A DNA stretch of 64,000 nucleotides, taken from assembly GCA_001179505.1 (NCBI GenBank), contig CDMY01000242.1:87043-151042 (forward strand), read 5' to 3'. Position 1 is the first letter of the stretch, and every line of letters begins with the position of its first letter. Under the pieces are notes generated by a model. It saw nothing but the letters and a program-made list of their open reading frames with translations. It was not told the DNA's origin and did no database searches. Origin of the DNA: Vitrella brassicaformis CCMP3155 (taxonomy: Eukaryota > Protista > Chromerida). Of this stretch, positions 6,401 through 64,000 are shown one piece after another. Position numbers and translations under genes: made by a program.

Positions 6401-7196
6401 GAAGCGACACCGCTGCAGACATGAGGCGTACCTTGGCGTGCGGGCCGTCCTCGTCAAAGTCCTTAAGCACACACACACACACACACACAAATCATAGCAA
6501 GGATGGATGGATGGATCCACCGGCGTGTGTGTGAACAGGCACGCACCCTGCTTCTCTTGTCGCGCATGCTGGGCAGCGACGTGGTCGACAGCTCGCCCAT
6601 ATCACGCGGCGTCACCGTCAGCGGAGGCAAACCTGACACAGCACACAGACATACAGACATACACACAGACAGACATGCATCGCGATCGTGCCGTTCTCGT
6701 CACTGGCTCACGCACCCTCAGTCGAGCGTCCTCTCCCCACTGCAGAGAGCGGCAGCCGACCTGACACACCTGACACACAACACCCATACACACGCACACC
6801 CACTTCCACACGAGAGACACCGCATGTGCCTCACATCGTGTCCGGACTGCCAGCCTGCCTGACTGACCGGCATTGGGTCGTTTGATCCGTCTCTCCAGCT
6901 CCCGCTTCTCATTCACCAGTGCCCGCAGCTCGTTCTCCATGTCACCCACACGCGACGACGGCGCACTGCCGCCACCACCGCCGCCTGGACGCTCACGGTC
7001 CCGATTATGATCTCTCGTGAGGCCTCTATCTCGCTCTCTGTCTCTATCCCGGTCTCGTGGCGAGTAGGAAGGGCCTGCACGGTCCGCTGACACACAGAGA
7101 GAAGAAAGGGACAGCGGATGCAGGCAGGCAGGCCTGAAGGCGTGGCTCTGTCTTGGTTCCGTCTGTGTGGACGCATCAGCCCAGCTCACCCATCAT
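3434..7196 (-). CDS. PNN: Pinin/SDK/MemA-family splicing factor with Q/E/P-rich tail and C-terminal SAP domain
   Basis: Micro first exon ATGATGG|GT at 7196-7190 joins to ADRAGPSY; then RD/RE dipeptides. Pinin hallmarks: KKRNRNMFAGLMGHLKKAK and HFSKMRNFIKT...IFYLPAKHN. The last exons give EQIMDMK|VTELKDHCR|RFNMLVGGNKGDLQKRLCDALGYGTAPPQ* (SAP consensus). Confidence 0.85.
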
Positions 7197-7355
7197 GCGG
7201 CGGTCGTCATCTCTGTGTGGAGGTCCTCTGTCGCCGCCACGCTCACGATAATCACGCTCCGACATCCTTCCCGCGCATATTTGTTACACGGAAAAGACCG
7301 CCCTAAAACCATCGCTCCTTTCTTCCCTGAGAGGCAGCAGGTCGAGAACGGTGCC

Positions 7356-7876
7356 ATGCCCTTGACTGAGCCTCGTATTGCCGTCGACGTTTTGGGCACC
7401 GGATACACAATGAGTCTGGGCGTCGACGAGAACACCACAGCCAGGGACCTGATCAGGAAGGTCGGCGGACGGACACAACGGAGATGCAGCACAGAGCTCT
7501 GTGCGTCCGTCTCTGAGCGTGTGTCGTGTTCTCCGCGTGCAGATCCACACATTCACAAGGCAACACTGTCCAGAGAGGCACTTCGAGATGGATCTCTATG
7601 TCAACATAAGGCCGGTGCTGCACGAGGACATCAAAATCAAGGACAACTGGTGAGTGACAGACAGCTGTGGTGGCACATACATACAGAAAAACACCACGAC
7701 GGCAGGACAGGAGCGTATGTGTGTGCGTTTCCTGTCTGTCTGTCTGCCTCAGCGAGGATACGGATAAATCTATGGCGGTCCCTCGCACGACAACGTCAGC
7801 CACGCTGGTGCCCTCTCGGCAGTGGACGCGTTGGCGGCGGACGTACACGCCTTTGGGCGAGGATGAGTCGAGATGA
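7356..7876 (+). CDS. Divergent ubiquitin-like (beta-grasp) protein, ~111 aa, 3 exons
   Basis: Exons 7356-7460, 7543-7649 and 7753-7876 are in phase. IAVDVLGTGYTMSLGVDENTTARDLIRKI...MDLYVNIRPVLHEDIKIKDN follows the ubiquitin pattern. No terminal GG. Confidence 0.6.
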
Positions 7877-8713
7877 AGGAGTGGGACCGGCGCAGCTGTG
7901 ACCGGCCGCGTGGGAGTGAGGACACTGCCTTATGCCCGAGTCACTCGCCCATGCAGACACACAAACAGACAGACGGGGATGGGTACTCTTCTCTGTACAA
8001 GGGCTGGCTGACTGACTGACTGGCTGACTGACAAGGGGGGATGCTCAGTGCACCATAGAGTAGAGTGTGCGCATGGCATGCCCATGTGCTCTGTGACGTT
8101 TCCCTTTGACTGAGGCGCCAAGTAGTTTTTATTCGGTTCGTTCACGGGCTTTCTTTCTGCCCCCAATGCTTGCTTTATCGTGTGGGTGTATGGTGTGGTA
8201 TGCGTGTCGGCTTGGCTTTATTGGATTGCATCCATCAGACAGACACAGAAAGACCATTGCTGATGTTAAGTGCATCTATCTATGCATCCATCCATCCGTG
8301 AATGCATTTCAAGGACGTGTGTGCGATGCGCACGGATGGACACCATATACCCACAGGCAGCATGCATTCTGTCACCAGCAACGTCCCGCGTTCCGTTCAG
8401 CAGCGTACACATACATGGGGCGCTCCTTCGTGTGTGAGGGTGCGACGGGCGGGTGAGTGAATGAGCCTGCTGCTGGTTGCTGGCCAGCCGATTCAGCCAC
8501 CCGCCCGTGGCATCAAGAGATATGCGGTGGCCCGATGGCCGCTCCAGCCATGCGCACCGCGGCAGACTCACCCACACACACGTAGCTATATACAAGTAGG
8601 AAAAGAAGCGAGATAAAGAGCCGTCAGTCGTTGCTCTCTCTACCGTCCTAGCTATCCATCCTAATCAAACCCGTCATGTCATACCCGTCCGCTCACCCAC
8701 CCCACCCACCCAT

Positions 8714-8764
8714 AGAGTGAGCGTGAGGGAAGAGTGAGCGTGAGGGAAGAGTGAGCGTGAGGGA
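8714..8764. repeat. 17-bp minisatellite x3 (AGAGTGAGCGTGAGGGA)
   Basis: Three exact tandem copies read directly. Confidence 0.9.
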
Positions 8765-8845
8765 GGGAGTCGATCCCCTATGCTCTAGCGGGTGGCATCA
8801 TATATGTAGACGAATGCACGCAAACACCATCCTCCTCTCCTGCGC

Positions 8846-8881
<36 letters not shown>

Positions 8882-8959
8882 GACATACACACACAGTCCG
8901 TCGACCAATTAATTGATGGAGAGCCTGCCTTCACCTGTCTGTCACTTCCTTCTTGTGCT

Positions 8960-9588
8960 TCATGCTGCGGGAGCTGCAAAGAGTATCATGCACACTCCCA
9001 CAGCCGCCACCCCGAGCGCAGTGCCGACGACACACACTCCACACACCGCGAGCATCGTCCCCAAGGCCTGGCAAAGGCAACAACGATGGAGGCCGATTGG
9101 AGGGCGCGGAACAGACGAATGAGCGAAAGGTGCGGCCATGACTGACCTGGATAGCCATGTTGTCCGTGGTGGAGGGCAGGGTCGGAGCGCCGGGGGAGCT
9201 GACGGGGGTGGGCCACGGCTCGGCCACGAGGGCAAACACATCCGAATCCTTACTGCAAGAAAGGAACACACAAGGTCGACCACATGTGCACGCATCTTGA
9301 GTTGTCTGACTTGCCTCGTGCTCGTGATGATCTCAGTTTCGTCCACAATCTCGCCATTGCGCGTCAGGTGCTTCACCGTCACTCTCAAAGCCTGGTTCAG
9401 CTGCACTCAGACACACAGCGAACACTCACTCTCACAGACACACAGAGGCAGAGTCTCTGCGTGCAGATGCACACCTCTTGGATGTACTGCTTGGCCGTCT
9501 TTCGGTCGTCAACGGGCAGCAGGATGGCCAGCCCTGGGACGCCGGTGGCCTCACCCGCGCGAAGCCTCAACATCTGGGTGACCGGCAT
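8960..9588 (-). CDS. Ubiquitin-like domain + Pro/Ser/Thr linker + C-terminal membrane anchor, 137 aa, 4 exons
   Basis: Exons 9588-9475, 9400-9315, 9252-9147 and 9067-8960; the second intron is GC-AG. Protein: MPVTQML...LLPVDDRKTAKQYIQE-LNQALRVTVKHLTRNGEIVDETEIITSTSKDSDVFALVAEPWPTPVSSPGAPTLPSTTDNMAIQ-ALGTMLAVCGVCVVGTALGVAAVGVCMILFAAPAA*. Confidence 0.65.
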
Positions 9589-9802
9589 GGTGGGGAAGCT
9601 GCTGGGGTAGAAAGATGGTGTCGAGATTCGTCTGTCTGCGAAGGTGGCGTGCCCGCCGCTTACCAACACAAGACAGGCGCATCTCACAGCTGAGCTTGCA
9701 GATGATTCCGATCCCTCCTTTTCTTTCTGTGAGTGTATCTGGCGGCAGATCTGTGAAGACTTGAGGCGAAACTGTCGATAGATACCTTGACGGCCGCTTC
9801 CG

Positions 9803-11351
9803 ATGAGAAAGCTGAAAGAGAAGGTGCGGAGAGAGATGAATGTGCACACACACGGGCCATGACACAGGGCAGACAGACCTACGCACATCTGACGACCGAA
9901 CAACTTATTCAGATCACTTTGTGTCTGTCCATCAGGAGCCCTTGTCGTCAGAGCATGACGATGGCGAGTCGGCGGCTGTGGATGGATCCCAGCACGACTA
10001 CGGTGCCGAGGCTGCTGCCAACGCCGAGATTGCAATGGCTGTCCTCAACAACGGCACCGGCGATGAATGGTCGGCACACTCATACGTCACACATCGTCGG
10101 TTGGTGAAGCGGTCTCTCTCTCCTCGTGTGTGCATCTCATCTGCAGGAGTGGTGTGGGTGTGGGTGTGGGAAGTGCTATGAGGCCCGCACACAGGGTGGA
10201 GAAGAAAACGAGAGGCTATGACGACAGGGACCTCGGCTTCCATCCCAGGTGCGCGTGGGGGGGCTCCCAAACACACATGCGATGCGGTGCGTTCTCACCA
10301 TCTCTCGTGTGAATGTGTGTGCGTGTGTTGGTGAAGGTACGACCCCCTCAAGGCCGACTCGCGTCAGTATCTGCTGCACCCCACTCCTTCTGCTTCTCCT
10401 GCCGCTGCTGATGCTGCTCAGCAGCAGCACAAGGAGCCGAAAGCCAAGAAGAGAAAGACCAAAGCGAAGAAGGAACAGGATGATGAACCGATACAACACG
10501 CCGACAAGGGCAACGAATCGACAGAGGTGAGTATGGGTCCATCCATCCGTCCATGTGCCGTCGACTCTCGACAATACTTGGCGTGGTGTGCATTGCATTC
10601 ATACGTGCAGCAAGAGGCATTGGCGCCGGCACCACCAGACGCACAAGCAGCAGTGGCAGCAGCGGACACGGCCCACGTCCGTCTGGAGGTGCATCCCCTC
10701 TTCGCCTCCATGTTCAGAAAGGCCAACCAACCACACACACAGGACGACCAGCAGACAGGTACGCATACGCACATCCGCATAGGCACCTCCTCTCACTGAT
10801 GCGTGTGCCCGTTGTGTGTGCAGCAGGTGATCTGAAGCAGCAGCAGGGAGCACCACGACGGCAGAAGGCCTCCCGAGAGAAGGGCGACACACAGACGCAG
10901 CCATCAGCTGCAGCTGGGTCGGGTGGCGAGCTGCAGTGGGCGGCATCCGTGTTGGGCGAGGGGGTGCTCGACGATGCTAAGGGCGAGAAACCCAAGAAAA
11001 GCCGGCACAAGAAGCCTCCTTCAGACGGGAAGAACGCTCTCACAGGTGGGCAAGGGCAGCGCCACCACCCATCCACACGCCCCTTCATCCATCCATCTGT
11101 CGGCATGATGAATGAATTGGTGTGCAGGTCGCTGGGGGTGCGCGGACCCCCCTCCCTGCCCAGTCGGCCCCCTCAACTGTCGGCCCTTCTGGCGGACTGA
11201 GAGCTTAGATGCAGTGGAGGCCCAGTGGATGGCGCGGCGCCGGGCACTCACGGCCGACTATAAGTCGAAACACAAACAGGCGCTGAGGAGCCAGAGGAAC
11301 AGGGGCAAGGCTGGTGGTGGTCGTGGTGGTGGTGGTGTTGAGCCCGACTGA
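9803..11351 (+). CDS. NOL8/Nop8-like nucleolar protein (C-terminal motifs only; no RRM seen)
   Basis: Exons give MRKLKEK|EPLSSEH..., RYDPLKADSRQYLL, and terminal RPFWRTESLDAVEAQWMARRRALTADYKSKHKQALRSQR. These recall the NOL8 YDP motif and FWR..W.AR..L..D..KHK.A.R C-terminus. Internal exon bounds are approximate. Confidence 0.5.
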
Positions 11352-11864
11352 CCCGAGTGTGAAAGAGTGTGGGGATGTTCCATGGGGGCATCGGTGGTTC
11401 ATGAGAGTGACCAACAGACACACACACACACACGGATTATGCATGTGTGTATGGGTGGGTTGTCTGTCGGAAGTGAGTGATGGATCGATTGGCTGGCTGT
11501 ACAAGGGTTAATGTATGTATGTATGCAAACGTCATCAACGGCACAGACAGACAGAGGCATTGGTCATGTCATGGCCTCATGGTCACATCTGTGTCATGCA
11601 GTCAATGACTACATAGAGAGAGTGTCTTGTGGTGTGGGTGGGATGATGCCGCGCACTGGTCCGTCATCGATCATCTAACGTATCAGCTGCACTGCAAACA
11701 CATCGCAACCCACAAATACACAAAGGGGCCGTCGCTCCTGCCTTTCAATCTCACCTCACCTGTGTTGTGTTGTGCGTGGCGACGTGGTGCTGTATTGTCG
11801 AATCAGCCACTGCCCACCTGCACACATACCATACAGGGGCGAGCATAGCGTACCCGGTTCCGCG

Positions 11865-11895
<31 letters not shown>

Positions 11896-11942
11896 ACAGC
11901 CACGCATGAGTGTGTCGTGTGCCCGCCCCGCCACGCCCCGCC

Positions 11943-12065
11943 TCACCCACCCACCTGCCACACCTCCATCTCGGTGCATGTGAAGGTGGACGTCTGCGCC
12001 AGTGTGCCGCTGCTCTTCTTATTGAATCTCCCCTTGAAGCCCTCCGACAGCTCATCCCTCTCGAT
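11943..12065 (-). pseudogene. C-terminal fragment of a TLDc domain (3' half of an interrupted exon)
   Basis: IERDELSEGFKGRFNKKSSGTLAQTSTFTCTEMEVWQVGG* aligns with the TLDc ends of the paralogs in this window. Confidence 0.85.
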
Positions 12066-12978
12066 GGGACCCCACGCGAATGAGTGTCGTCGAACTGTTA
12101 CGAGGGGGGAGGGGCCCCCGAGTAATGGGAGGCGATCGGCCAGACGGAGAGCATAGGAAAATGGCGGGCAACAAATATACACAGTTTGTCGAGAGTGATT
12201 TTTGGTCGCCTTGAGGTTGAGTGAGGTTGAGTACGTATCGCAGAAGGGCTGGACAAGAGGAGACGGCAGAGGTTTCGGCAGAATTCACGTGTGGCGCACA
12301 GAAACTGGCTTAGTTCCAAGTTTATCGTTCTGTTTGCTGAGTGCATGCGGCGAGTGTTGGGGAATAGGAAGCCTGCAATTACAAAGCCTTCGACGAGAGG
12401 AGCGATGCAATCCCCCCGGGCCTTAAAGGGCAGACGTGTAGGGATTCGAGGCAGACGATGATGCATAGGACGACGAGCGTATGTCGGTAGGACGGCAGGC
12501 ATTGGTATCGGTGGGTCTTTGCAAAGGGAGACTGCGCGCTGTCATGATGCGGAGGCGTGTTATGGGGGCGTCTTGCCTCAGAAGTGGACTGACCTTTTTG
12601 TGTGGTTCAAGCTGTTTCAGTGACCGTTGTCGTCTTGTGCGGTGACTTGTGGCTCGAGAAACTTGTGTATATATATGCTCAGTCGCCCTCAAAATACGCC
12701 GGAAGATGTCCAGAGAGTACCTCAGTCTCTCACTGATTTCGCATCGTCAACGCACGTTCGACTTGCGCCTGCATCTGCGTAGGCCGCAGACGTATAGAGT
12801 AATTACGTACGGTCATCTTTGCATTGATTGATTTATCGTATTGCGTTCGCAGGATATCGATCAGATAGATCATCGGCATTCGTTGCCATGTGGTGAAGGT
12901 GAAGCCTACACAACCACACAACCGTGCGCTGCAGATGTGGATGTGTGTGTGTGTGTGTGTGTGGTGTCTTTCAGCCTT

Positions 12979-20289: not shown

Positions 20290-22371
20290 TCAGCCGGTGG
20301 AAATCTGCACATCCATCCATCCATCCACAGACACGCGGATCGACACTTCCACACAGATGAGTGTGTGGTGACGGCCACCCACCTGCCAGATTTCCATCTC
20401 ATCGCACGTGAAGGTCTCGGACTTCGCCAATGTGCCGTTGCCCGTGCTGTCCCTCCGTCCCCTGTACCCCTCCGAAAGGCACTCCTTATTGATGCCCTGG
20501 TGGCACCGACTGAGGTCGGCCGCCGGACCAGGCTGGCCCCACCCCAACCACAGGTGCCCGCAAGCGATGCCACCCATGGCCACTTTCGCACGGTAGTCCA
20601 TATTGTGGGCCTTCACCACCCCCTGTGTGCCGGCCACCCCCACCGACTGCCTCCTCTCGGGCAGCTCGATCTTCGTCGGCGTCTCGTACGCACCCGACAG
20701 TGCATAGAAGAAGACGGGCGCCTTGTAGATGTTGGCCTTCGTGGGGTCCTTGGGCGGGTCGAGTGGGCTGTCGATGAAGCAGCCAAATCGGTGTGCGTCG
20801 CCATCTCGGAGGGCAAAGAGGAGGCCGCTCTTGCCCGCCACGCACTCGAGCATCTTAGGGAAGGCATACGTGTCGCGACTACCCCTGACGGACGACACAC
20901 AACACACACACAGAGACCCGAAGGCAGATCTTTCAGGGCCCCCTCGTTGCTGTCTGTGTGTGTGGCTCGCTGACTTGTATACGAGTGACGGCATTGGTGA
21001 GGTCTTGCCCGTCATCTTGAGCAGCTCCGCCATCTCGTCGTCAGTCTCGATGACGAAGCCGCCCCCCGCCACGCCGCTGAAGAAGGGCTCGTACTTCAGC
21101 CCATACATCTCAGTGTCGCCCTGTATCTGCCTGCAGTTGCTCGCCGTCGGTGACTTGACGATGCTGCCGGGCGGTGCGCACCGCCGTCTGCGGGCGAAGT
21201 CGATCACCTTCATGAGATGGTTGGGGCGGATGCACGACACACTCGAACCGCTGCAAGGAGGATGGGAAGGACGTACTTATGACGATTGTCCCTTTGGCTC
21301 GCTTGTGGTGTGTTGCCCACCTGTGGAAGGTTGTGTAGAGTCGTTTGTCGCGGCCAACACGCGCCAGTGTGGCCGCAGTGGTCGACACTGTCTTGTCCAG
21401 GACGCGCACACTCCTTATCTCGTCCACCCCTCCTCCCTGCCCCCCCTCCTCAGTGGCCAGCAGCGGCTTGACGGTCTTGTGGAAGTTGGCCAGGCCGCGC
21501 TGCACCTCGCCCAGCCGCCCCACTGACGCATCCAGGCTTGCAGTGCTGCTCTTGACTGTCGCCATGTGGTCGCCCTCCTCACCCTCCTTTCCCTCATCTT
21601 CATCGTCTTCCTCGCCCTCCTCGCCCTCCTCCTCCTCGCTCTCCAGCTCCAGTGCATCGAGTTGCATGTGGTCGTCATCGTTGGTGTGCGCGGCCGTTTC
21701 CGCGGGTGCGTCGATGTCGAGGCCGGTCTTGGTTGTGAAGAGGAGATGGTGCCAGAAGAGGGATGAGCTGTCGGTGTCGTGTGGAGGGGTCAGGAGGATC
21801 TCGTGGCTCTCGCCCTGGGCGTCAGCAGCACCGACACCGGTGACCTCGTCACGCAACCCGGTGAATGAAAGAACAGGCAACGCACAGCATGCATTCGGCT
21901 AATTCTATGTGAGTTCATCTACCCTCTCCCCCCACTCTCGACCCACCATTCCATATACACTGGATCAGCGTTGAGGAATGGCCGGCCCTCTGCGTCCTTG
22001 GGCAGCCCATCCAGATGGTACAGCAGCAGGTATGCGATGATGCTCTCACTCACGCCGGGCAGCAGCAGAGGCTTGCGCGGCACACACAGCACCGTCCCGC
22101 CCACATTGATCTCGATCTCCCCATCCAGTCGCCCCGTCACCATCAGCTGCCCTCCATTCCTCGTGATTAGGTCCTTGATCGTCTTGGCTTGCTGCCGCAG
22201 CTTCTTGCGCATCTGTTTGGCTGATTTCTGTATGGCGGCGAGTGCCTCATCGGCCTCCTGCAGCTCTCTATCAATGGTCGGGCGACAGATGGACGGGAGG
22301 GGCTCAAAGTCATCGCTGCCGTCCGCAGGCGACTCGGGCGACTCCTGCGCCTTGCGCTTCTTCGCAAACAT
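20290..22371 (-). CDS. BTB(T1/KCTD-like)-BTB-TLDc protein, copy 1
   Basis: MFAKKRKAQ... EIEINVGG...LPKDAEGRPFL (BTB); acidic linker; second BTB-like SVRVLDKTVSTTAATL; TLDc LLFALRDGDAHRFGCFID...FFYALSG...FTCDEMEIWQV. Confidence 0.8.
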
Positions 22372-38691: not shown

Positions 38692-39610
38692 CTCACTTCT
38701 CAAGTCACCGATTGGTTGACAGACAGATCCTCACGCGCACACACCACACCACCACATCACATCACATCACATTGCACACACACACACGGGGAGGGGAAGG
38801 CAGACACAAACAGGTCCTCTCCACACCACACCACACACACGCGTACCCTCACACGTAAGCTCAGCTCGTTTATTGCATGCCACCCATCCACCCAGTGACC
38901 GATGTGATGGATGGATGGATTGACCGATTCATGTCTCCCTTCATGCCTTACTGGCGGAGCGGGGATCGCATCGTATCGGATGTGTGTGAGTGTGAGTGTG
39001 TGTGTCTGTCTGTGTGTATTGTATGTACGTATGAGTACCATTAATGAACATCTCACCATCCATCGATCGCTGGGCCGGCTGGATCGCTCGCTGGCTGGCG
39101 TGCGCTGCGCACCTGTGCATTACAATACAGGTCGGTTCGGTGGGGTGGTGGGGCTGGGGCGGGATGGATGGATGGATGGGGGCACACCAGTCAGTCAGTC
39201 AGTCAGGTCGCCTCTGACTGATGATGAATCCTTTTTCTACTTGTATGTATGTATTGTATGCATGTGGTGTGTGGGGTGGGTGTGTATCTATGGTCTGTCT
39301 GTCTGTCGGTCTGTGTGTGTGTGTGTGTCCTCTCCCTCCCCATGCACGTTTTCCTCGCTCTGTGCAAATTAAGGACGGGACGGCCGGGCGGGGCTCATCG
39401 GTGGCTGGATAGATGGATGGATGGATGGACAACGGACAAACGATGAATGTCAATTTCGGTGAAAGCTTCTCTCTGAATGAATGAAGACCTCTACACCCTC
39501 ACACACGCACACCCCATCAACAGTCAAGTCACCAACAGGCTGCTGGGAGCTGTGAGTGAGATGTGCTGAGGTGCGGTGCGCTTGAGGCCGGTTGTGTTGT
39601 GTGTCGTCAG

Positions 39611-39744
39611 TCACGACCGCTCGTCACGCCATGCAGCCGGGAGGGGACGACTGACTCATCATCGGCCGCTGCGCCGACGGTGGTTTTTCGCTTCTTCGAA
39701 CCAGCTGGCGCTGCTGCTGCGGCCGACATCGTCAATGGCCTAAG
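39611..39744 (-). pseudogene. Orphan duplicate of the 5' end of the BTB-TLDc gene at 45329
   Basis: Near-identical to 45211-45344 (MSAAAAAPAGSKKRKTTVG...), offset 5600 bp; the rest of the gene is absent. Confidence 0.85.
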
Positions 39745-39752
39745 TCCAATGA

Positions 39753-39810
39753 TGTGCAGGGTTTGAACCCTTGTGCCTCAGTAGGGTCAAATGTGCAGGG
39801 TTTCAAACCC
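39753..39810 (+). promoter_or_regulatory. Recurrent TGTGCAGGGTTT(C/G)AAACCC-type palindromic motif (telo-box-like)
   Basis: Two copies here; related copies at 45640-45681, 47590-47616 and ~1919-1931, each shortly upstream of a plus-strand start. Confidence 0.45.
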
Positions 39811-40167
39811 GCCAGCAACAGCAGTGCTAGTGCAGTGCTTGCCGCTCGCTTTTCTTCCTTGTGTGCTCGTGTGCTTACCGTTGTCAAGACGGTGTTTCAA
39901 AAAAAGTGGGAAAACAGCTGCGCTGCTTCGGTGGAAAACGGAGCCGTTCAGAACGGAGGTCGCCTTCAACCTGGCCGAACCTCGCACGCCCTTTTTCAAG
40001 AAAAGAAAAAGCGAATCCATCGGTTCAGGTGACGTATCTACGGCAGGAAGAGCCCTCGGAGTGGCTGATCTGACGTCCCCTCCACCCCCTGTGTGTGCTG
40101 TGTGTGCTGTGTGTGATTTTGTCACCCACGGTGTGGTGCTGGCTGCAGGCCGCCGATAAGCAAGAGG

Positions 40168-41490
40168 ATGACGTCGGTTCGGATGTTGCTGGCGGGTTTG
40201 TTGGGCGTGTTGGCCGTGGGCCTGCTGGGCCTTCCCCTCACCCACGGCAAGAACCTCTACACCCAGGAGCTCCACGACGACAGTGAGGGATGGATGGATG
40301 GCTAGATCTATTGATCTATGGACGTCGTGGAGGCTCTGTGTGTGGTGTGGATGGATGGATGGATGGCTGCAGCGACCATGGAGGAGCGCATGGACGCCAT
40401 CAATGATATCCATAACAACCCCAGTGCCTTCGTTGAGACTGGTGCGCAGATACAAGATGCGCCAATGCCGGCCCACCACCGCCACTCGACATCCGTGCCA
40501 TTCCGTGGTCTGATGAATGTGTGCATATCTGTCTGTGCGTCTGTGTGTGTGCAGGGTCCTCATCGGGTGCCCATCTGCAGGTGTCGTTGGCCGCCATCCA
40601 GCAGCAGCTGGAGCGAGGCACGGCCAGCCACAAGGCCGCCATAGCGGTGCACCAGGCTGCCATCGTCACACATCAAGAGGCCCTCAACGCCATGGAGGCC
40701 GCCGAGCAAAACATGAACGCCCTCACCGACAAAGCGACCAGCCGCGGTGTGGATGGATCATCGACATGTGTGTGTCGTGTATCTGTGTGTATCTGTGTGT
40801 GTGTGTGTGTGTGTGTCAGGGCTGTGTTCGTACAACGGCTCCGTATTCTGCAGTTTAGCCCTCAAGGGGCGAATTGTGGGATGGGGTGAATTGTGGCACC
40901 GGCTGCAAGTGCTGGAAGCACAACTGCATCGTGAGTACACATCTTTGACGACTGGCAGCGACAGACAGACAGACAGACGCGAAGGATCTCTCTCTCTCTC
41001 TCTGCGTGTGTGTGCGTGTGTGTGTGTGGTCTTCAGCCTAAAGCCGATTACGTCTTCTTCGTGGAGGAGGTCAAGACCATACGCACACACATGTCATTGT
41101 CTGTCTGTCAATGAGTGTGTCTGTGTGTGTGCAGGAGAAGTCCAAGCACCGGCGTAGGATGGATCATCGATGTGTGGTGGTGTATCTGTGTATCTGTGTG
41201 TGTGTGTGTGTGCGTGTGTGTGTGCGTCAGGGCTGTGTTCGTACAACGGCTCCGTATTCTGCAGTTTAGCCCTCAAGGGGCGAATTGTGGGATGGGGTGT
41301 TTTGTGGCACCGGCTGCAAGTGCTGGAAGCGCAACTGCATCGTAAGTACACATCTTTGATCACTGGCAGCAACAGACAGACAGACAGACAGACGCAAAGG
41401 ATCTCTCTCTCTCTCTTCTGTGCGTGTGTGCGTGGTCTTCAGCCTGAGGCCTTATATTATCATTATGTTTATTATTCTACGAATACTTGA
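40168..41490 (+). CDS. Secreted protein with a coiled segment and two Cys-rich repeats
   Basis: Signal peptide MTSVRMLLAGLLGVLAVGLLGLPLTHG; phase-1 exons; duplicated GELWDGV(N/F)CGTGCKCWK(H/R)NCI. Frame continuity needs a 37-nt intron or a frameshift. Confidence 0.55.
40745..41445. repeat. Tandem duplication of an exon-intron block, period 411 bp
   Basis: Exon starts at 40820 and 41231 with near-identical exon and flanking intron sequence. Confidence 0.9.
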
Positions 41491-43397
41491 GGCGGTGAGC
41501 GCGTCTGCCGGCCGGCCCGGGCAGGTGGGTGAGAGACCAGAAACAAACAAAAAAGACAGCAGACAGACAGACAGACAGACCTCTGTCTATATATCAGCAG
41601 CGGCACAGACATACAATACAGCATCAATCCAATCCAATCCAATCAGGCGTTTGTGCGTCTGTGTCTCTGTGAGTGTGCAGGTAGATATGTAGCTGTAGCC
41701 TACACACCGACGTGGCTAGGGAGGGGGAGAGAGAGGGGAGAGAGCACTTTACTTTTTGCTGACAGCATCAGACAGACACCTCACCTGTCCGGCTACACCA
41801 TTTCTTTTCAGACGGGCGGGCGGGCACACACACAGAGACAGAGAGAGAGAGAGAGATTGACACACACAGGATTTTGCAATGTGTGTGTGTGTGTGTGTGT
41901 GATTTGGGTGATCCACTGTGTGTCTGGCTGTCTGCCTGTCTGGCTGCGCATCCAAGTGTGTGTCCGTTGCGTTGGTGGAATATCCTTTGATGGACGGACC
42001 GATTCTTTGCGTGACGCCCTGTGTTCATCTGTTTAAGCGGTCCATACGGCGAGGACGAGTCAGTAGTTGAAGCGTCGACAGTCGACTCATGTCTTTCCCA
42101 CAACAAACACCCCATCCACCGCCACACACACAATAAGGCGGACGATGGTCCTCCTGCAATGGTGAGCCTTTTGTCTGATGAAATGCCATTTCTCCTCAAC
42201 ACTCAGTGACCAACCAACAGGCCGACACCATCATGTCTCTTGAGGCCGGCATGAGTTTCGCTGCATCAGGAGCCTTGGCAGTCGGCATGTTGTGTGGGCG
42301 TCTCACCCTCTATGTGATGCCGTCGGGCCCGCTCAGCCGACCACCACCTGCACACACACACAAACACACATACACGAACAGACACGGACGGGTAAGCATA
42401 GCGCTGCCCTTTAACACACAAGCCAGCCATCAGTGTGTCGTGTCCTCTTTCCGTCCCATGGCCTGTTGAATGTGCCATGTTTCCATCGGCCGACCGAGGA
42501 GACCATCGCACACACACAGCAGACCGACACAAACAAAACCACACCAATGTATGCAATGATGGCCCATTAATGGCGTGTCTGTCTTGTCTGAGCATGTGCC
42601 TCCGTCGTGAGACGCACGTCGATGCTCTTCGTGCTGGGCGGTTGTTCGTGTGTCTGTCGCAGAGTCGTGACCTCATCGATGGCCTGGTGTCTCGAGCTGA
42701 GACGCCATGGTCAGGTGGCGATCGGCTCGTTGACACACGAAGAATGAACGACACACGCAGACAGACACACAGACACACAGACAGAATGGATGGATGGATG
42801 GAGTGAGTGAATGTCAGGCACTTTCTGGTGATCGAAGTGACGAGTCCGTCAAAGAGACAGTCAGGGCACACGCGCTGCCCTGTCAGGCCACAATGACGCA
42901 CAGATAAGACGTATTGATTTGAACCTCAAGGTGTCTCAGCGGTTTTCCTGCTCCGATTGTGTGTTGTGAGTGAATGTCGGGATGTTTCTGATTGATTATC
43001 GAAGTGACGAGGCCTCAGTCGAAAAAGGTTGACACGCACACACATGATCATGTCTGCACATGGACACGAATGAGTCATCAGTCCGTCATGCTGTCGGGTC
43101 TGAGTCAGTCGCTAGGAAGCTGGCTACACACTGCCGCCATCAATCAAGCTGCAGCAATGCTCCTCCTCCCTTCGTATACACATACTACCTGCAACACACA
43201 CACACACACAGAGAGAGAGAGAGGAAAGCGGCGGCTTGCCTCGTGTGTGTGATGATGTGTGCTGCAGTGTTGTGTCACCGGCCTCTGCCGCCGTCTATGT
43301 GTGCTGTCAGATCGGTTCAGCCGCTGCCCACCTGCACACAGAACACATACAGCAGCGCTACCGACAGCCAGCCAGCCATATGTGCCCTCCATGCCCC

Positions 43398-45329
43398 TCA
43401 CACACACACCTGCCAGATCTCCATCTCATCGCACGTGAAGTCGAGGGACTGCGCTAGTCTGCCGTTGCCGCGCTTAGTGACCTCCCCTCTGTAGCCGGGC
43501 GAAAGGCCATCCGCCTTGATCCACTGGCAGCTGCTGAGGTCGGCCGCAGGACCAGGTTGAGCCCACCCCAACCAGAGGACTCCAGCAACGCGACCGATGC
43601 GGGCATTTGCACTCCAGTCCATGTTGCTTGCCTTCACCGCCCCCTGTGTGCCGGCCACCCTCACCATCTGCCACTCCTCGGGTATCTCGATCTTGGTCGG
43701 CGCGTCATACGCACCCGACAGCGAATAGAAGAAAAGGGGCACCTTGTAGCCGTTGGTCTCTGTTGGGTCGTCTGGGGGGTTGATCTCGCCGTCGATGAAG
43801 CATCCGAAGCGGTGTGTGTCGCCATCTCGGAGGGCGAAGAGCAGGCCGCTCTTGCCCTCGACGCACTCGAGCATCTTGGGGAAGGCATACGTGTCACGAC
43901 TGCCCCTGACAGACGACACACACAGAAGGACAATGTGGTCTCGGCCTGTCATCTGCCTCTGGCGTGTGAGTGCTTCATCTCACTTGTACAGCAGTGATGG
44001 CGCTACAGCGATCTTCTTGTCCGTCATCTTCATCACCGCCAGCCACTCGTCGGCCGTCGTGATCACATCGGACGCTCCCGCCGCCCCAGCGAGGGGCGGC
44101 ACCGTGTTGAGGCCGTACATGCCCAACTCGACGGCGAACATCTCCTTCTCGTGCGGCGCGATCACCGGCGGATGCACGAACCTGCAAGCCGGCATCACGG
44201 TCAGCCGGCGGCCGAAGTCGACGATGAGTCGGAGGAATTTGAGGGACGCCTGGCGTGCCTCCTGGTCGGGCCACTCATCGCTGGATGAACACACATACAC
44301 ACAGATACCAATGGCTTCTCCTTCCTCCTCTCTGCTGCCTTACGGGTTGTAACGCTTGACGAGGGCATGGTTGCGTCCGAAGGGTGCGATCGTACGGCGG
44401 AGCACCGACACGTCCTCATCGCGAACGGTCAGTGTCATCACCCCGGTCTCCTCACCGCTGCTGTCCCCCTTGACGAACGGCCGGATGGCCGCCACGAAGG
44501 CCTTCATCTCCTCCTTCTGCTTCTGCAGGCCCTCGAGCAGACTCTCGTAGCGCCTCATGTGCTCATCTATCTGCCGAAACACCCCCTTCACCCCGCCCTC
44601 CCCGTCCCCTCCCTCCCTCTGCCCCTCTTGGCCGCTCCCGTCGGCCATCTCTACATCCCGCTGCTCGCCTCCCCCGGCACCATTTGCCGATGCTGCTGCC
44701 GACGAGCCGGGTGCTCGCGGCTGCTCCTCGATCTCGATATCACCGCCCAGCTTGTTTGTGATGAACAGCGAGTGGTACTCGGAGTATGAGGGATCCTCAC
44801 TCTCGGGCGAATGGATGGCGATCTCGTCCAAGTGAGGGCTCTGTAGCAGCTCCAGCTGGTCACTCAGCCAGGCGAAATAGGGCGGATGCATCTCGAGGAA
44901 TGGCAGACTGTTGGCGTCCTTGGGCAGGGCGTCGATGAAGTGCAGCAGCAGGGTGGAGAGGTACGTCCGCTTCGTCTTAGGGTGCAAGAGGGCTAACACG
45001 GGAATCGACATGACAGTGCCGCCCACGTTGAGCTTGAGCTTGCCGCTGGTCTTGTGCGGCTCCACCGTGCCGCCGTTTGCGATGAAGAGCTGCTTGATCT
45101 CCGCCGCCAGCTGCTCGATTTCGCCCTCTGCCGCAGCTGCTGCCGTCTTGAACACGCCACGAAGGCCATCCATGCATCCTGCCGCCTGCTCAACCACCGC
45201 ATCGACCTCCTCACGACCGCTGGTCACGCCATGCAGCCGGGAGGGGACGACTGACTCATCATCGGCCGCTTCGCCGACGGTGGTTTTCCGCTTCTTCGAA
45301 CCAGCTGGCGCTGCTGCTGCGGCCGACAT
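43398..45329 (-). CDS. BTB-BTB-TLDc protein, copy 2
   Basis: MSAAAAAPAGSKKRK...KLKLNVGGTV...LPKDANSLPFLE; second BTB-like TLTVRDEDVSVLRRT; TLDc HRFGCFIDG...FFYSLSG...FTCDEMEIWQV. Confidence 0.82.
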
Positions 45330-45852
45330 CGTCAATGGCCTAAGGAAATACGTTATGCTATGCAGCTGGGTTGGTTGGTTGGTTGGTTAGTGTGTTTAAC
45401 GAGACTCGTGTCTGTAACCCTGGAGGGATCCTGTTGTCTCACGCACTAAACTAGCAGCATGTACATGCAAAGCATGCACACGGCCTGTCTACCCCTCCCT
45501 GCACTGGCACCGGCGGACAAACAGATGGCAGCAGAGAGCACTGGCTGCCTTGTAGAACGTTGACAAACACCGATTCCGGCTACATACACAAGAACGGGCG
45601 CTGTCGCCCAGCAAGAGCCATGGCAAGTGTACTGGGTGTGATGTGCTGGGTTGTGAACCCTTGTGCAAGGGTTTTGAACCCGATCACCCCAAGTCCCCAA
45701 CCCGACCCGAGCGACTGTTGACCAACCGTCTTGACCAGGGTGAGCACACGAGCACACACACACACACACATTCCACCAATTGATCACGACAGCCGGCAGG
45801 CACGGCTCGTTGCTGATGGCGTTTCTCTCTCTGAGATGTGTGGTGTGTGCAG

Positions 45853-47253
45853 ATGTTTCCTTTTGCCCGACGAGTGCGTCCTCTTGCCCTGAGGCGACTC
45901 GCAAGCAGCCACCTGCAGACCCTACCCACGATCGGCCGCGCCTTCTCTTCCGCCGCCGACGTGATGCCGCAACCTGGACAGCGCTTTACAATTGACGGCC
46001 CTCCGGAGGGCAAGGGGTATTATCCTATCGAGTATGCGGTGAAGCTGCCTGACCTGACGGAGAAGGAGATGAAGGAGATTTCCAGGCGACTCGGTGCCGA
46101 GTATCTCTCTGTGGCGCCATCTGCACGACAGCACAGCTACCCTCCCAAGGGCGTCCGGCACCAGGGAACCCCGTGTGTCAACCTCGTGTGTGAAGGAAGC
46201 GGGAAGCCGATTAACGTGCTCTTCGTCGTTGACACGACCGCCGTGTGGACTTATTTTACCAAGGAGGCCAGAGAGCTTCTGCACCCGGACCGTGTTATCT
46301 CGCCGCTTTTTCGGATTCGGATTGAGGATCACCTGGGCAAGGATCTGCTGATCGAGTGTGCGGACTTGTTCGGTGACTTCGAGCACATCAACATTCTGGC
46401 AACAACCGCGATGGCGAAGCTCGGGTGGTGGCCGGTCGTCGACTGGGGGAGAGGCTCGTTTGTCATGGCCCCCGTGAGTATTGGCGAGCGTCAGTGGGGG
46501 CCAGGAGTTTGGGCGGGCTGGGATGGGGAGGGTCTGCAGGTGGCTGCTCGTGAGCCCCTCACGAGCAGCAGTGCCTTGTCTTCCGCCCCGAACGTGAAGT
46601 CGCCAGCTGGACAAGTGCTTCATCGAGAGGAGAAGGTTACATCTTTCGATGGCCCTGCGGAGGGCAAGGCGCGTTATCCTCACGAGTATGCGGTGAAGCT
46701 GCCTGACCTGACGGAGGAGGACATGAAGGAGATCTCCAGGCGACTCGGTGCCGAGTATCTCTCTGTGGCGCCATATCCACGTCAGCACAGCTACCCGCCC
46801 GAGGGCGTCCTGCACGTGCCCCTCTATCGCCTGTGCGTCAACCTCGTGTGTCGCTGGGATCCCCTCCACGGGGGATTCGGGAAGCCGATTAACGTGCTCT
46901 TCGTCATCGACACGACCGCCGTGTGGTCCTACCTGAGCAAGAGGGCCATGGCTGCGCTTCTCGAGAAACCCATCGACAGCGATGCCATCGACAGCGGTGC
47001 CCTCCCGTCGACCGTGACGGTGCGGATTGAGGATCACCTGGGCAAGGATCGCCTGATCGAGTGTGCGCAGTCTTTCGGCGACTGGGAGCACATCAACATC
47101 CTGGGAACAAAAGCCATGGGGAGGCTCGGGTGGTCACCGCTCCTCGACTGGGATACGGGATTGGTAATCATGGCCCCGGTGAGGATCGGTAAGGTCCGGT
47201 GGTGGCCAGGAGTTTGGGCACAGATAGATAGCGGAAAATGGAGCTGCAGCTAG
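45853..47253 (+). CDS. Intronless 466-aa protein with two tandem retropepsin-like domains and a mitochondrial-type leader
   Basis: Leader MFPFARRVRPLALRRLASS. Both repeats carry NVLFV(V/I)DTTAVW(T/S)Y and INIL(A/G)T.AM..LG, in place of the hhhDTG and hhGxxhL motifs. Confidence 0.7.
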   Translation: MFPFARRVRPLALRRLASSHLQTLPTIGRAFSSAADVMPQPGQRFTIDGPPEGKGYYPIEYAVKLPDLTEKEMKEISRRLGAEYLSVAPSARQHSYPPKGVRHQGTPCVNLVCEGSGKPINVLFVVDTTAVWTYFTKEARELLHPDRVISPLFRIRIEDHLGKDLLIECADLFGDFEHINILATTAMAKLGWWPVVDWGRGSFVMAPVSIGERQWGPGVWAGWDGEGLQVAAREPLTSSSALSSAPNVKSPAGQVLHREEKVTSFDGPAEGKARYPHEYAVKLPDLTEEDMKEISRRLGAEYLSVAPYPRQHSYPPEGVLHVPLYRLCVNLVCRWDPLHGGFGKPINVLFVIDTTAVWSYLSKRAMAALLEKPIDSDAIDSGALPSTVTVRIEDHLGKDRLIECAQSFGDWEHINILGTKAMGRLGWSPLLDWDTGLVIMAPVRIGKVRWWPGVWAQIDSGKWSCS

Positions 47254-47650
47254 ACAGTCAGCTGGAGAGCCAGGCACTCATGTGTGTGTATCATATGGCA
47301 TGCGACTTCTTTATCGGTGTCCGATTGGGTGCTGCTGTGCTGCTGCTGTGCTGCTGGCCTGTTCATATAGCCTTGATGTGGCGTGTGTGGCGTGTCCATG
47401 TGTGTCGCCCTGTGCTTGGTTTGTGTTCGAGACTGTCAGTTAGGAACATTCTACTGATGAACCTTCATGGCACATTCATATAATCCATCTGTCGACTCTG
47501 TCTATCCATCATGCAATGCAGCATAGTCATTTGCATTCGATCTGCAATGCATATACACACGCCAACTGTCTGTTGCCTTTCCACCGTGCGGTCAAATGTG
47601 CAGGGTTTCCAAACCCACCGGTCACCCCAAAGATCTGCGAGAGATCATTG

Positions 47651-60364: not shown

Positions 60365-62391
60365 CTATCTCCCGCCCCGAAGAGGCAGGCAGCTCATGAA
60401 GCTCCAGCGCTTCCTCGGCCGACCCCCAAGTGCAGGGTGCGCTGCTGCCGCATTGGATCGGCAGCCCCTGCTGCCGGTCTCAACATGCCACACCTCCAGC
60501 TCACTGCAGGTGAAGTTCAGGGACTGCGCCAATGTGCCGCTGCCCCGATACCGCGCCGGCAAATGCTCCTTTTCGATCCACTGTTGGCAGCTGCTGAGGT
60601 CGGCTGCCGGACCCGAAGTATGAGCAAATCCCAGCCACAAGACTCCTCCAGCGCCACCGCCACCGATGCGCACATTCGCAGTCGGCAACCCCGCTTTGCT
60701 CTTCACCACCCCACTTGTGCCGGCCACATCCACCACCTGACTCTCTGAGGGTAGCTCGATCTTGGTCGTACGCTTATAGGCGCCAGACAGCGGTGGGCCC
60801 GTGGTGGGCAGCGAAAAGAAGAAGATGGGAACGCGGTATATGCCGCTCGTCTTAGTGGGGTCTTGTGGCGGGGTGAGTGGCCCGTCAACAAAGCAGCCAA
60901 ATCGGTGGGTGCGATCCTTGACGGCGAAGAGCAGGCCGCTCTTGCCTGCCACCTTGTCAATGAACGCCTTGTACTCGAAACCGTCGCTGCGAGACCTGAC
61001 ATACACAGCACACGGCGCATAGAGAAGGTCAAAGGGATTTCGTGGATGGCTTCTCACTTGAAGACGAGCGACGGCTTGCAGATGGGTTTGTGGATCATGT
61101 CCAGGACGGCCACCCACTCGTCTGCGGACTTGATGATCCACCCAATGCCCGCCGGCAGATCAACGGGCGGCGAGTACGAGTAGGAGAGGCCGTACTGACA
61201 CAGACAATATTGACACAGACCAGATGTGACCGACCGGCAAGCCACAATAGCAAACCACTCAGACTTACCATCATGAGATCCTCTTTGAACAGCCCACACT
61301 CGCTGTCCTCCATCGCTGGGGGCCGTACGAATTGCCCCGCTGGCATGGTGCCGCCGATCCGACGAGCGAAGTCGACTGTGTTGACAAAGTGACGGGTGGG
61401 GGTCTGACGCACTCGACGGTCACCCCAACAGGGCGGAGTACTGAACACCCACACAAACACATAACAGAACAGCTCACATGTGACCCTCTGTGTGTCGACC
61501 TCTCTGTTTCTGCTGTGCCCGCCCACTTTGAGAATCGCGTGAGCAAAGGGTGATCACTGCCAAGTCGCTGCAATGTCCGCTTCAGCATGCTCACCTTCTT
61601 GCCGAGCACTTCCAGGCTCAGCACCTCCACGTCACCATCGTCCTGGCCCTTCATGAATGGCTGCATGGCCGAGAAGAATCCCGAGAGCTCCTCCCTGCCC
61701 TTTGTGAGCCTCTTCATGAGCCTCTCCAGCTCACCCAGCGACTCCTCGACGACATCCGCAATGGCCTTGTCCTTCCCATCGCATGCCGTGCCATCGAGAT
61801 TGGGCGTGACGGCACCGCTGCCCTCCTGTGGCAGAGCTGGAAACGACGAGAGCGTGCGCATGAAGAGGGCGTGATACTCGTTGTAAGCTGGGTCGGATGC
61901 CTTGGATGCCGGCAGCTGGACAGTGTCGGTGCGGTTGGTCTCGTAGAGAGTCAGCCCGTCCAGAAAGGCCTCGAAGTATGCCGGTGACACCTCCAGATAA
62001 AATTGCCCGCCTTCGTCTCTCGGGAGTGCATCGGGGAAGCAGAGCAGCAGGACCGCAATGTACCGCCGCTTGATGAGCTGGAGAGCGCTACGAGATACAG
62101 GGAACAACACTCCACCTGTCGATTGCACACACGCACACACACCAAACCAAACCGGTCACACAGTTAGTAGTGCCAGCGCCTCTCTGGAGTGTTTTTTGCC
62201 TTGCCCGCATTGATCAGCATCTCCCCACTGGCAGAGGTCTCCTGCAGAGCTTCCCTTTTGGCAGCAACGAAGCGTGAGATCTCATCCGTGAGAGTCGTCT
62301 TGGCGCTTCTCAGCCGCTCGAACGACGCATCGAAGGCGCCACCGACACTCTCGCACCCCGTGAGCAGCCTGAGCACCGGATCCTCCTCCAT
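60365..62391 (-). CDS. BTB-BTB-TLDc protein, copy 3
   Basis: MEEDPVL...LINAG|GVLFPVSR (GC-AG intron 62204-62116)...LPRDEGGQFYLEV; SLEVLGKKVSMLKRTL; TLDc HRFGCFVDG...FTCSELEVWHV. Confidence 0.8.
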
Positions 62392-63111: not shown

Positions 63112-64000
63112 TCATGAAGCTCCAGCGCTTCCTCGCGGCCGATCCCCAAGTCCAGGGTGCGCTGCTGCCGCATTGGATCGCCAGCCCGTGCTGCCGGTCT
63201 CAACATGCCACACCTCCAGCTCACCACAGCGAAAGTTCAGAGACTGCGCCAGTGTCCCCTGGTCATACTTATTGATAGCCGCCCCCGTGTAGCCCGCCGG
63301 AAGGTGCTCCCGCGGGATCCACTGTTGGCAGCTGCTGAGGTCGGCCGCAGGACCTGGCTCACCATAGCCCAGCCATAGGTGCCCGCGAGCGATGCCCACG
63401 TTGGCAGTCGGCAGGTCCTTGTTGTCCTTGACTACCCCCTGTGTGCCGGCCACGTGCACTCCGTGCCTGTCCTCAGGTATATCGATCTTGGTTGGGGCAT
63501 CGCACGCACCCGAGAGCGAAAAGAAGAAGACGGGCACCTTGTAGTTGCGGCTCGTCTTAGTGGGGTCTTGTGGCGGGGTCAGCGGCCCGTCAACGAAGCA
63601 GCCAAATCGGTGGGTGCGATCCTTGACGGCGAAGAGCAGGCCGCTCTTGCCCGCCACCTTGTCAAGGAACGACGTGTACTCGAAACCGTCGCTGCTGGAT
63701 CTGACATACACAGCACACGGCACATAGAGAAGGTCAAATGAGTCAAAGGGATGGTTGCTCTCACTTCAAGGCCAGCGACGGCTTGCAGATGGGTTTGTGG
63801 ATCATGTCCAGGACGGCCACCCACTCGTCTGCCGACTTGATGATCCACTCATTGCCCGCCGGCAGATCAACGGGCGGCGAGTACGAGTAGGAGAGGCCGT
63901 ACTGACACAGACAATATCGACACAGACCAGATGTCACCGACCGGCAAGCCACAATAGCAAACCACTCAGACTTACCATCATGAGATCCTCTTTGAACAGC
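63112..64000 (-). CDS. BTB-TLDc copy 4, 3' part (5' end beyond the window)
   Basis: Near-identical linker exon and introns to copy 3; TLDc ...FRCGELEVWHV. Confidence 0.8.

Follow-up and report, generated by a model that had tools for sequence, protein, structure and literature searches.

A young tandem of two retropepsin-like modules in the chromerid Vitrella brassicaformis, a candidate single-chain pseudo-protease

Contig CDMY01000242.1 of Vitrella brassicaformis CCMP3155 (assembly GCA_001179505.1) carries a gene that codes for two retropepsin-like modules in one polypeptide chain. The gene lies in a stretch of 64,000 nucleotides (nt), positions 87,043 to 151,042 of the contig, which we refer to as the window and in whose numbering all positions are given; a single uninterrupted open frame runs from 45838 to 47253 on its plus strand. 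The two modules are 56% identical (residues 17-224 against 238-459, 227 columns, BLASTP E 1e-79), and they are the product of an in-frame internal duplication in the Vitrella lineage that preceded the copying of the gene itself to a site about 50 kb away. Both belong to an undescribed eukaryotic family with a clan-AA-like core, and both read D-T-T where the family consensus reads D-T-G. We favor the view that the product is a non-catalytic or barely active pseudo-dimer.

The tandem gene and its transcripts

The modules were recognized in an earlier note on this DNA, made from the sequence alone, as two copies of about 200 amino acids (aa), each with hydrophobic residues leading into DTTA and with an INIL(A/G) motif. 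This description stands in full. DTTA lies at residues 127 and 353 and HINIL at 178, with Ala as the next residue, in module 1, and at 413, with Gly next, in module 2 (Table 1). The repeat is also evident in the DNA, where four blocks of the first half recur 633 to 705 nt downstream with 78 to 90% identity. The repeat unit spans approximately residues 17-236 and takes in the distal part of the leader, which is why the linker at about residues 238-254 resembles the leader.

Table 1. Features of the tandem retropepsin-like gene, in window coordinates
Feature	Coordinates	Strand	Remarks
5′ untranslated exon 1, minimum extent	45654..45739	+	Bases 1-86 of contig L002 identical; Logan contigs extend further upstream
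5′ untranslated intron, 113 nt	45740..45852	+	GTGAGC...TGCAG; exactly omitted by L002; ends directly 5′ of ATG
Coding sequence	45853..47253	+	First ATG 45853; 466 codons and stop, without intron
Predicted mitochondrial presequence, about residues 1-32	45853..45948	+	GRAF↓SS fits the R-2/R-3 motif; putative cleavage site from textbook MPP/Icp55 motifs
Module 1 (residues 57-206), retropepsin-like, including the N-terminal extension of the family	46021..46470	+	Profile without Vitrella rows, E 2.5e-28
Module 1 active-site triplet D127-T128-T129 (family consensus D-T-G)	46231..46239	+	
Module 1 INILA (clan AA 'ILG' motif, Gly to Ala)	46387..46401	+	
Linker, residues 225-262	46525..46638	+	About 238-254 from duplicated distal leader; repeat D4, 45927-45980 versus 46560-46613
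Module 2 (residues 275-436), retropepsin-like, including the N-terminal extension of the family	46675..47160	+	Profile E 5.2e-37; AlphaFold2 model, pLDDT 85; retropepsin fold matches
Module 2 active-site triplet D353-T354-T355	46909..46917	+	
Module 2 INILG ('ILG' motif)	47092..47106	+	Followed by helix, model residues 158-164

The open reading frame (ORF) is a real, transcribed nuclear gene of V. brassicaformis. A transcript-like JGI contig of 948 nt (L002) matches the window in three parts, and its mature 5′ untranslated region (UTR) contains an in-frame stop, so the ATG at 45853 is the start codon. The gene had been called intronless, which is true of the coding sequence but not of the 5′ UTR, where L002 and read depth together reveal an intron. 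Logan contigs from four runs, each of a different study, were placed on 45600-47500; those of runs X4 and X7 cover 45603-45738 and stop at the donor site, and in runs X1, X4, and X7 the intron has 10 to 30 times less depth than the exons. Low intron depth is what RNA would give, and these three runs are probably RNA-like. Transcripts of both this gene and its paralog are present.

In the Logan runs the gene is fragmented into unitigs at repeated words. In run X4 an exact 267-nt contig nevertheless bridges 46441-46707, from module 1 through the linker into module 2, at a depth similar to that of the flanks, and a variant of it is present in run X3; X1 and X7 have no contig over the linker (46496-46623), although such gaps prove nothing. 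The coding part of L002 is identical to the window from 45853 onward apart from a jump from 46120 to 46775, an in-frame deletion of 654 nt that leaves an ORF of 248 aa (P0003). The length of this deletion is the spacing of a 90%-identical repeat (D2), and we thus read the deletion as a de Bruijn collapse and not as a single-module mRNA. The ORF of a second contig (P0002) joins the leader of the window gene to the second module of the paralog. Both P0002 and P0003 are therefore rejected as a true single-module gene, the former as a chimera of paralogs and the latter as a collapsed repeat.

The leader is basic and in composition resembles a mitochondrial presequence, with six Arg and no Asp or Glu in residues 1-36, and has no hydrophobic core (maximum Kyte-Doolittle value 0.64), which rules out a signal peptide; we also argue against a bipartite plastid leader, as would be expected in a chromerid. 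GRAF↓SS we take to be a match to the textbook R-2/R-3 mitochondrial processing motif. Some family members outside Vitrella, such as P0022 of Panagrolaimus, also have basic, acid-free leaders, and others have signal peptides or no extension.

A minus-strand ORF of 389 codons (45922..47091) overlaps the gene, but all homology is on the plus strand and it is probably a by-product of a GC-rich, internally repeated coding sequence. Pfam searches of the neighboring ORFs and an Rfam search of 45200-45900 gave no matches. Upstream, at 45600-45663, contig depth reaches 9,435 in X4, 8,679 in X7, and 473 in X1, compared with about 10 to 400 over the gene, and at 45632 the contigs part from the window sequence and continue into AGAAGCCAGAAGGGGGAAGT... 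Either a spliced 5′ exon of the very highly expressed minus-strand neighbor or a dispersed abundant sequence may account for this.

An uncharacterized family with a retropepsin fold

Word-based searches with the window protein find only Vitrella sequences. An exhaustive profile search with five Vitrella modules as the query finds 134 representatives at E≤1e-3, mostly 140 to 250 residues long, in nematodes, chytrids, Mucoromycota, and Vitrella, and Pfam has no model for them. A hidden Markov model (HMM) built from the 127 non-Vitrella rows matches both modules, at HMM positions 20-174 for module 1 and 20-169 for module 2, and the match takes in an N-terminal extension that precedes the core. 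The family consensus, ...EYLS...FP..G...G.N.RLMVNLVC...NVxFLVDTGSPxTYLS...HFxxVNVLGMDxL (with the extension, L.D..(n)EYLS ... R(L/M)..NLVC ... NV.FLVDTGSP.TYLS ... VNVLGMD), contains the two defining signatures of clan AA in the DTG/ILG template, D-T-G-S/A and I-L-G (PMC2642776). The domain family, which Pfam does not cover, has a clan-AA-like core and a conserved N-terminal helical extension.

Pfam nonetheless recognizes some of the relatives. At E≤0.01, 11 of 61 homologs match PF13975 and six match PF13650, and most of these matches fall below gathering scores and are centered on the DTG stretch. Only P0036, a second tandem of the same family discussed below, passes the gathering scores, for both PF13975 and PF13650 (38.1 and 35.5 bits, module 2). 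In a search of the family profile against the PDB the only match is ApRick, the retropepsin of Rickettsia, on the DTG stretch (E 0.59). The named members are all uncharacterized: they come from Synchytrium microbalum (annotated 'Peptidase A2 domain-containing protein'), Phlyctochytrium bullatum, Caenorhabditis tropicalis, C. brenneri, Caenorhabditis sp. 36, Ditylenchus, Acrobeloides, and Panagrolaimus. A characterized member was sought, for example in C. elegans, and only unnamed proteins turned up; our literature searches yielded no publication about this family or about tandem retropepsins that occur naturally. We note that gene models fuse some nematode entries to unrelated domains, such as Hsp70 (P0049 of Ditylenchus) and Aldedh (P0033 of C. 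tropicalis), and that others bear automatic names with no relation to the domain (TNase-like, DUF1758), all of which are probably artifacts of annotation.

Module 2 was modeled alone, because in a full-length MAFFT alignment all 112 single-domain homologs aligned to module 2 and only junk fell on module 1. With the 134-row alignment, AlphaFold2 gives a predicted local distance difference test (pLDDT) score of 85.1 and a predicted template modeling (pTM) score of 0.83, compared with a pLDDT of 30 from a 5-row alignment of Vitrella sequences only. The elements of the model follow the order of the DTG/ILG template: strand, psi-loop, strand, helix, hairpin, ILG, helix, and strand. The top 50 Foldseek matches in the PDB are all aspartic proteases, with ApRick first (E 2.4e-3, probability 1.00), and VIA-align, which is independent of Foldseek, also places ApRick first (Z 8.5, 109 residues, root-mean-square deviation [rmsd] 3.6), followed by XMRV protease (Z 7.5), the RVP domain of Toxoplasma Ddi1 (7.2), and EIAV protease (6.8). 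Pepsins are also among the fold matches of the model. In the ESM Atlas the nearest structures are unnamed eukaryotic clusters from Nematoda and Mucoromycota (template modeling score 0.83, rmsd 2.1 to 2.2 over 158 to 159 residues, extension included), and after these clusters of the family itself come bacterial Asp_protease_2 clusters. A language-model feature search indicates the same clan.

We regard the retropepsin fold predicted for module 2 as established, and a like fold for module 1 would follow from homology (65% identity and the HMM match). The earlier call of a retropepsin-like domain is supported by the DTGS/VNVLG consensus, the Pfam matches of homologs, the model, and the fold searches, and the module 2 model takes an acid-protease fold. 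Among the weaker fold matches is a protein of the Leishmania major mitochondrial ribosome (PDB 7ane chain ao; Z 4.8, 100 residues). Some members of the family have mitochondrial-type leaders, although at this Z value the resemblance may merely reflect a common arrangement.

Duplication, selection, and the catalytic motifs

The closest database protein is an unnamed V. brassicaformis CCMP3155 product (P0001) with 79% identity, encoded on the same contig at a locus (L001) that is 84% identical in DNA to window positions 45709-47479. This locus also holds paralogs of the genes that neighbor the window gene, in a circularly permuted order, and is thus a segmental duplicate and not the same locus. 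In the window a 245-aa gene is followed by a TLD-like gene and the tandem retropepsin, and at L001 the order is tandem retropepsin, TLD-like gene, and 245-aa gene; the shared segment spans 39354-47479 in the window and 5701-12114 at L001, with 80 to 88% DNA identity. Such an arrangement would fit descent from a tandem array whose repeating unit comprised the three genes, and more fragments of TLD-like genes lie in the window at 20510-20914, 60573-60952, and 63290-63657. A retroelement-borne protease can be rejected, as the shared segment carries neighboring cellular genes and no reverse transcriptase or integrase lies nearby.

At L001 the paralogous frame is open over 476 codons (5809-7239) and keeps both modules, but a 1-nt deletion (TTTT to TTT) just 3′ of the ATG shifts the leader into a frame other than that of the start codon. 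As a consequence, the deposited model P0001 begins at an internal Met; it ends in another frame by way of introns. The deletion may mark either an incipient pseudogene or a homopolymer error of the assembly. There are at least eight V. brassicaformis paralogs, and in a quick tree they form one clade (Shimodaira-Hasegawa-like approximate likelihood ratio test [SH-aLRT] support 95). In a tree of modules, the first modules of the window gene and its paralog pair with each other, as do the second modules, and the four together are a clade (99% support). This branching order places the internal duplication before that of the gene.

Synonymous divergence (dS) is about 0.36 between modules and 0.15 to 0.30 between the paralogs, and the ratio of nonsynonymous to synonymous divergence (dN/dS) is 0.48 to 0.76 throughout and 0.48 to 0.65 against the paralog. 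When changes are polarized by using the other module as an outgroup, the window lineage receives 13 synonymous and 31 nonsynonymous changes and the paralog 10 and 24, respectively. These ratios and counts indicate weak constraint on the window gene, no stronger than that on the paralog.

A tandem has also arisen elsewhere in the family. P0036 is a continuous ORF in an AT-rich source (L003 266-1297, a Logan contig of SRR26782605), and its two modules are sisters in the tree, are 37% identical, and carry the triads DKGS and DTGA. This tandem is old and still open. At least two fusions have thus taken place, and the fused form can endure; the independent case argues that the domain works as a pair. 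A third candidate, P0136 (CEM18157.1; 509 aa, modules 93% identical), is rejected, as by tblastn it is probably two gene copies 1.7 kb apart that the gene model joins by a predicted intron (L004 3001-5653, on V. brassicaformis contig CDMY01000499.1); an ORF from an MMETSP transcript (P0004) codes for one module with its own C terminus.

Neither window module has the canonical D-T/S-G: both read D-T-T-A, as had been pointed out, and in both the Pro that follows DTGS in the family consensus is replaced. Module 2 has an ILG-type motif followed by a helix, whereas module 1 has lost its Gly. Across the 127 non-Vitrella representatives the catalytic column is Asp in 90, Asn in 18, Val in 7, and other residues in fewer; the Gly of DTG is kept in 82 and the full D-[TS]-G in 59. 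The DTG Thr, in contrast, is 89% conserved, the ILG Gly 98%, and several purely structural positions 94 to 99%. In retropepsins this Thr makes the 'fireman's grip' across the dimer interface, and because it outlasts the full triad, the family appears to conserve its paired architecture more strictly than catalysis. The family consensus has DTG (DTGS), fewer than half of the non-Vitrella representatives have the full triad, and no canonical triad occurs among the V. brassicaformis paralogs examined; these read DTTA (in four modules), DTTS, ATVT, NTGV, VTGP, and QTGT. A complete mutational scan of HIV-1 protease places D25, T26, and G27 among the positions with at least 15 null substitutions (PMC13098228).

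A candidate pseudo-dimer and its relation to known proteases

The reading we consider somewhat better supported than not is that the gene codes for a single-chain, pseudo-dimeric pseudo-protease, predicted to be mitochondrial, that binds peptides or proteins through two retropepsin-fold modules and is weakly constrained. Following import into mitochondria and removal of the leader, the two modules would pack together through the usual retropepsin dimer interface, with the fireman's-grip Thr and the ILG helix kept, to give a pseudo-dimer with one peptide-binding cleft. Hydrolysis would be lost or very slow, and the protein would act in binding. Intramolecular pairing is plausible by analogy: the chain ends of the two subunits are adjacent in retropepsin dimers, tethered dimers of HIV-1 protease exist, and the approximately 90 residues that join the cores make the geometry permissive. 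That hydrolytic activity is probably lost or very weak is expected because of the D-T-T in both psi-loops, the degenerate triads of the paralogs, the intolerance of HIV-1 protease to changes at G27, the loss of the ILG Gly in module 1, the replaced Pro, and the weak constraint. The earlier note had left the choice between an active protease and a pseudo-protease, and with the DTG Gly replaced, paralog triads degenerate, Asp often lost in the family, and selection relaxed, the evidence leans toward the latter.

Several observations weigh against this interpretation. The window protein has no matches in Pfam, the models PF00077, PF13650, PF13975, and PF08284 included, or among PDB sequences, and its fold matches score moderately (Foldseek E no better than 2.4e-3, Z no higher than 8.5). 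Mitochondrial import is a best guess, made with composition heuristics alone. Neither the window gene nor its paralog has lost the catalytic Asp from either module, which could reflect selection for catalysis, and an altered triad does not preclude cutting, as shown by Plasmodium HAP, an aspartic protease that still cuts. A dN/dS ratio near 0.5 to 0.8 is equally expected of a gene drifting toward loss.

An active enzyme is the first alternative, and we think it unlikely. In this case the product would be an independently evolved, pepsin-like pseudo-dimer with an Asp127/Asp353 dyad, in which the Thr is tolerated or tunes specificity or pH optimum, and it would process or degrade proteins in mitochondria. 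The gene is expressed, the predicted fold is retropepsin-like, the tandem provides both halves of one active site, and Asp and the following Thr are retained in both modules of both paralogs. However, HIV-1 protease accepts practically no replacement of the Gly of DTG (PMC13098228), no Vitrella paralog examined has the canonical triad, the ILG Gly lost from module 1 is 98% conserved, the Pro after DTGS is gone, and purifying selection is weak.

It is also rather improbable that the tandem is a recent and essentially neutral internal duplication in a fast-evolving, expanded family, with modules that pair between chains or not at all and a gene that is weakly functional or drifting to loss. Together with the weak constraint, the main argument for such drift is the paralog leader, thrown out of frame with its ATG by a 1-nt deletion; dS between the modules is low, dN/dS is 0.5 to 0.76 in every comparison, nonsynonymous and synonymous changes in the window lineage (31:13) stand in the same ratio as in the paralog, and the region has undergone repeated segmental duplication. 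Both paralogs have nonetheless kept frames of about 470 codons with only in-frame indels and are transcribed, the motif blocks do not vary among the four modules, and the unrelated P0036 tandem remains open at 37% identity between its modules.

Very improbable is an assembly artifact that conceals a single-module gene like P0003, since, although L002 and P0002 each encode one module and two runs have a gap at the linker, L002 departs from the window by a single in-frame jump within a repeat, P0002 is a chimera, a contig spans both modules at flank depth, and the independently assembled paralog has the same two-module ORF.

The standard account derives two-lobed pepsins from the duplication and fusion of a gene for a homodimeric retropepsin-like protein (PMC2642776). 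As far as our literature searches found, young natural single-chain double retropepsins are absent from the described repertoire; the Vitrella gene and the independent P0036 are such intermediates, with which one can ask what alters first after fusion, be it lobe asymmetry, loss of one or both catalytic loops, or the linker. More than half of the members of this unannotated family lack a full catalytic triad while keeping the dimer-interface Thr, a pattern that points to a widespread non-proteolytic use of the retropepsin fold. A bolder and distinctly doubtful proposal is that the DTT/DTT double retropepsin is catalytically competent in mitochondria, a young and independent re-run of the pepsin-forming fusion, with lobes still 56% identical, in an undescribed family that has fused more than once (the window lineage and P0036). 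The gene is of moderate interest as a natural analogue of that fusion, and of higher interest if active; should it prove to be no more than a pseudo-protease drifting in a single alga, it would interest only specialists in protein evolution.

Of the systems to which the Vitrella protein can be compared, the clan AA retropepsin-like proteases (ApRick/APRc, 5c9b; Ddi1 RVP, 7d66; XMRV, 3nr6; EIAV, 2fmb) are the closest, with the same predicted fold (Z 6.8 to 8.5 over 89 to 109 residues), a shared order of elements in the DTG/ILG template (PMC2642776), and a DTGS/DTGA and VNVLG consensus in the family of the Vitrella protein. These proteases are single domains that must homodimerize and have DTG or DSG, whereas the Vitrella protein has two domains in one chain and DTT. 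They also lack the conserved N-terminal extension of about 50 residues, and neither their Pfam models nor their PDB sequences match the Vitrella protein significantly in sequence. The pepsins of family A1 are analogous in having two homologous halves of acid-protease fold in each chain, each half with its own Asp loop. The Vitrella protein is not a member: it has no match to PF00026, and its lobes are retropepsin-sized and carry the extension of their own family. The lobes are still 56% identical, with dS of about 0.36, so the duplication is recent and lineage specific, and the tandem is an independent and much younger fusion.

The inactive homologs Bla g 2, Bg7S of soybean, and TAXI of wheat share the acid-protease fold and have altered catalytic motifs, binding rather than cutting; the cockroach allergen Bla g 2 is an inactive aspartic protease (PMC9541408). 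All three are among the VIA-align matches (ranks 26, 7, and 13, respectively). They are secreted proteins of the A1 pepsin family, in contrast to the Vitrella protein, which is retropepsin derived, tandem, and predicted to be mitochondrial. The tethered dimers of HIV-1 protease (PDB 3ka2, 'covalent dimer'; VIA-align rank 29) resemble the Vitrella protein in joining two retropepsin monomers head to tail. These are man-made, with short linkers and intact DTG, whereas the Vitrella tandem is a natural fusion in which the linker and extension together place about 90 residues between the cores.

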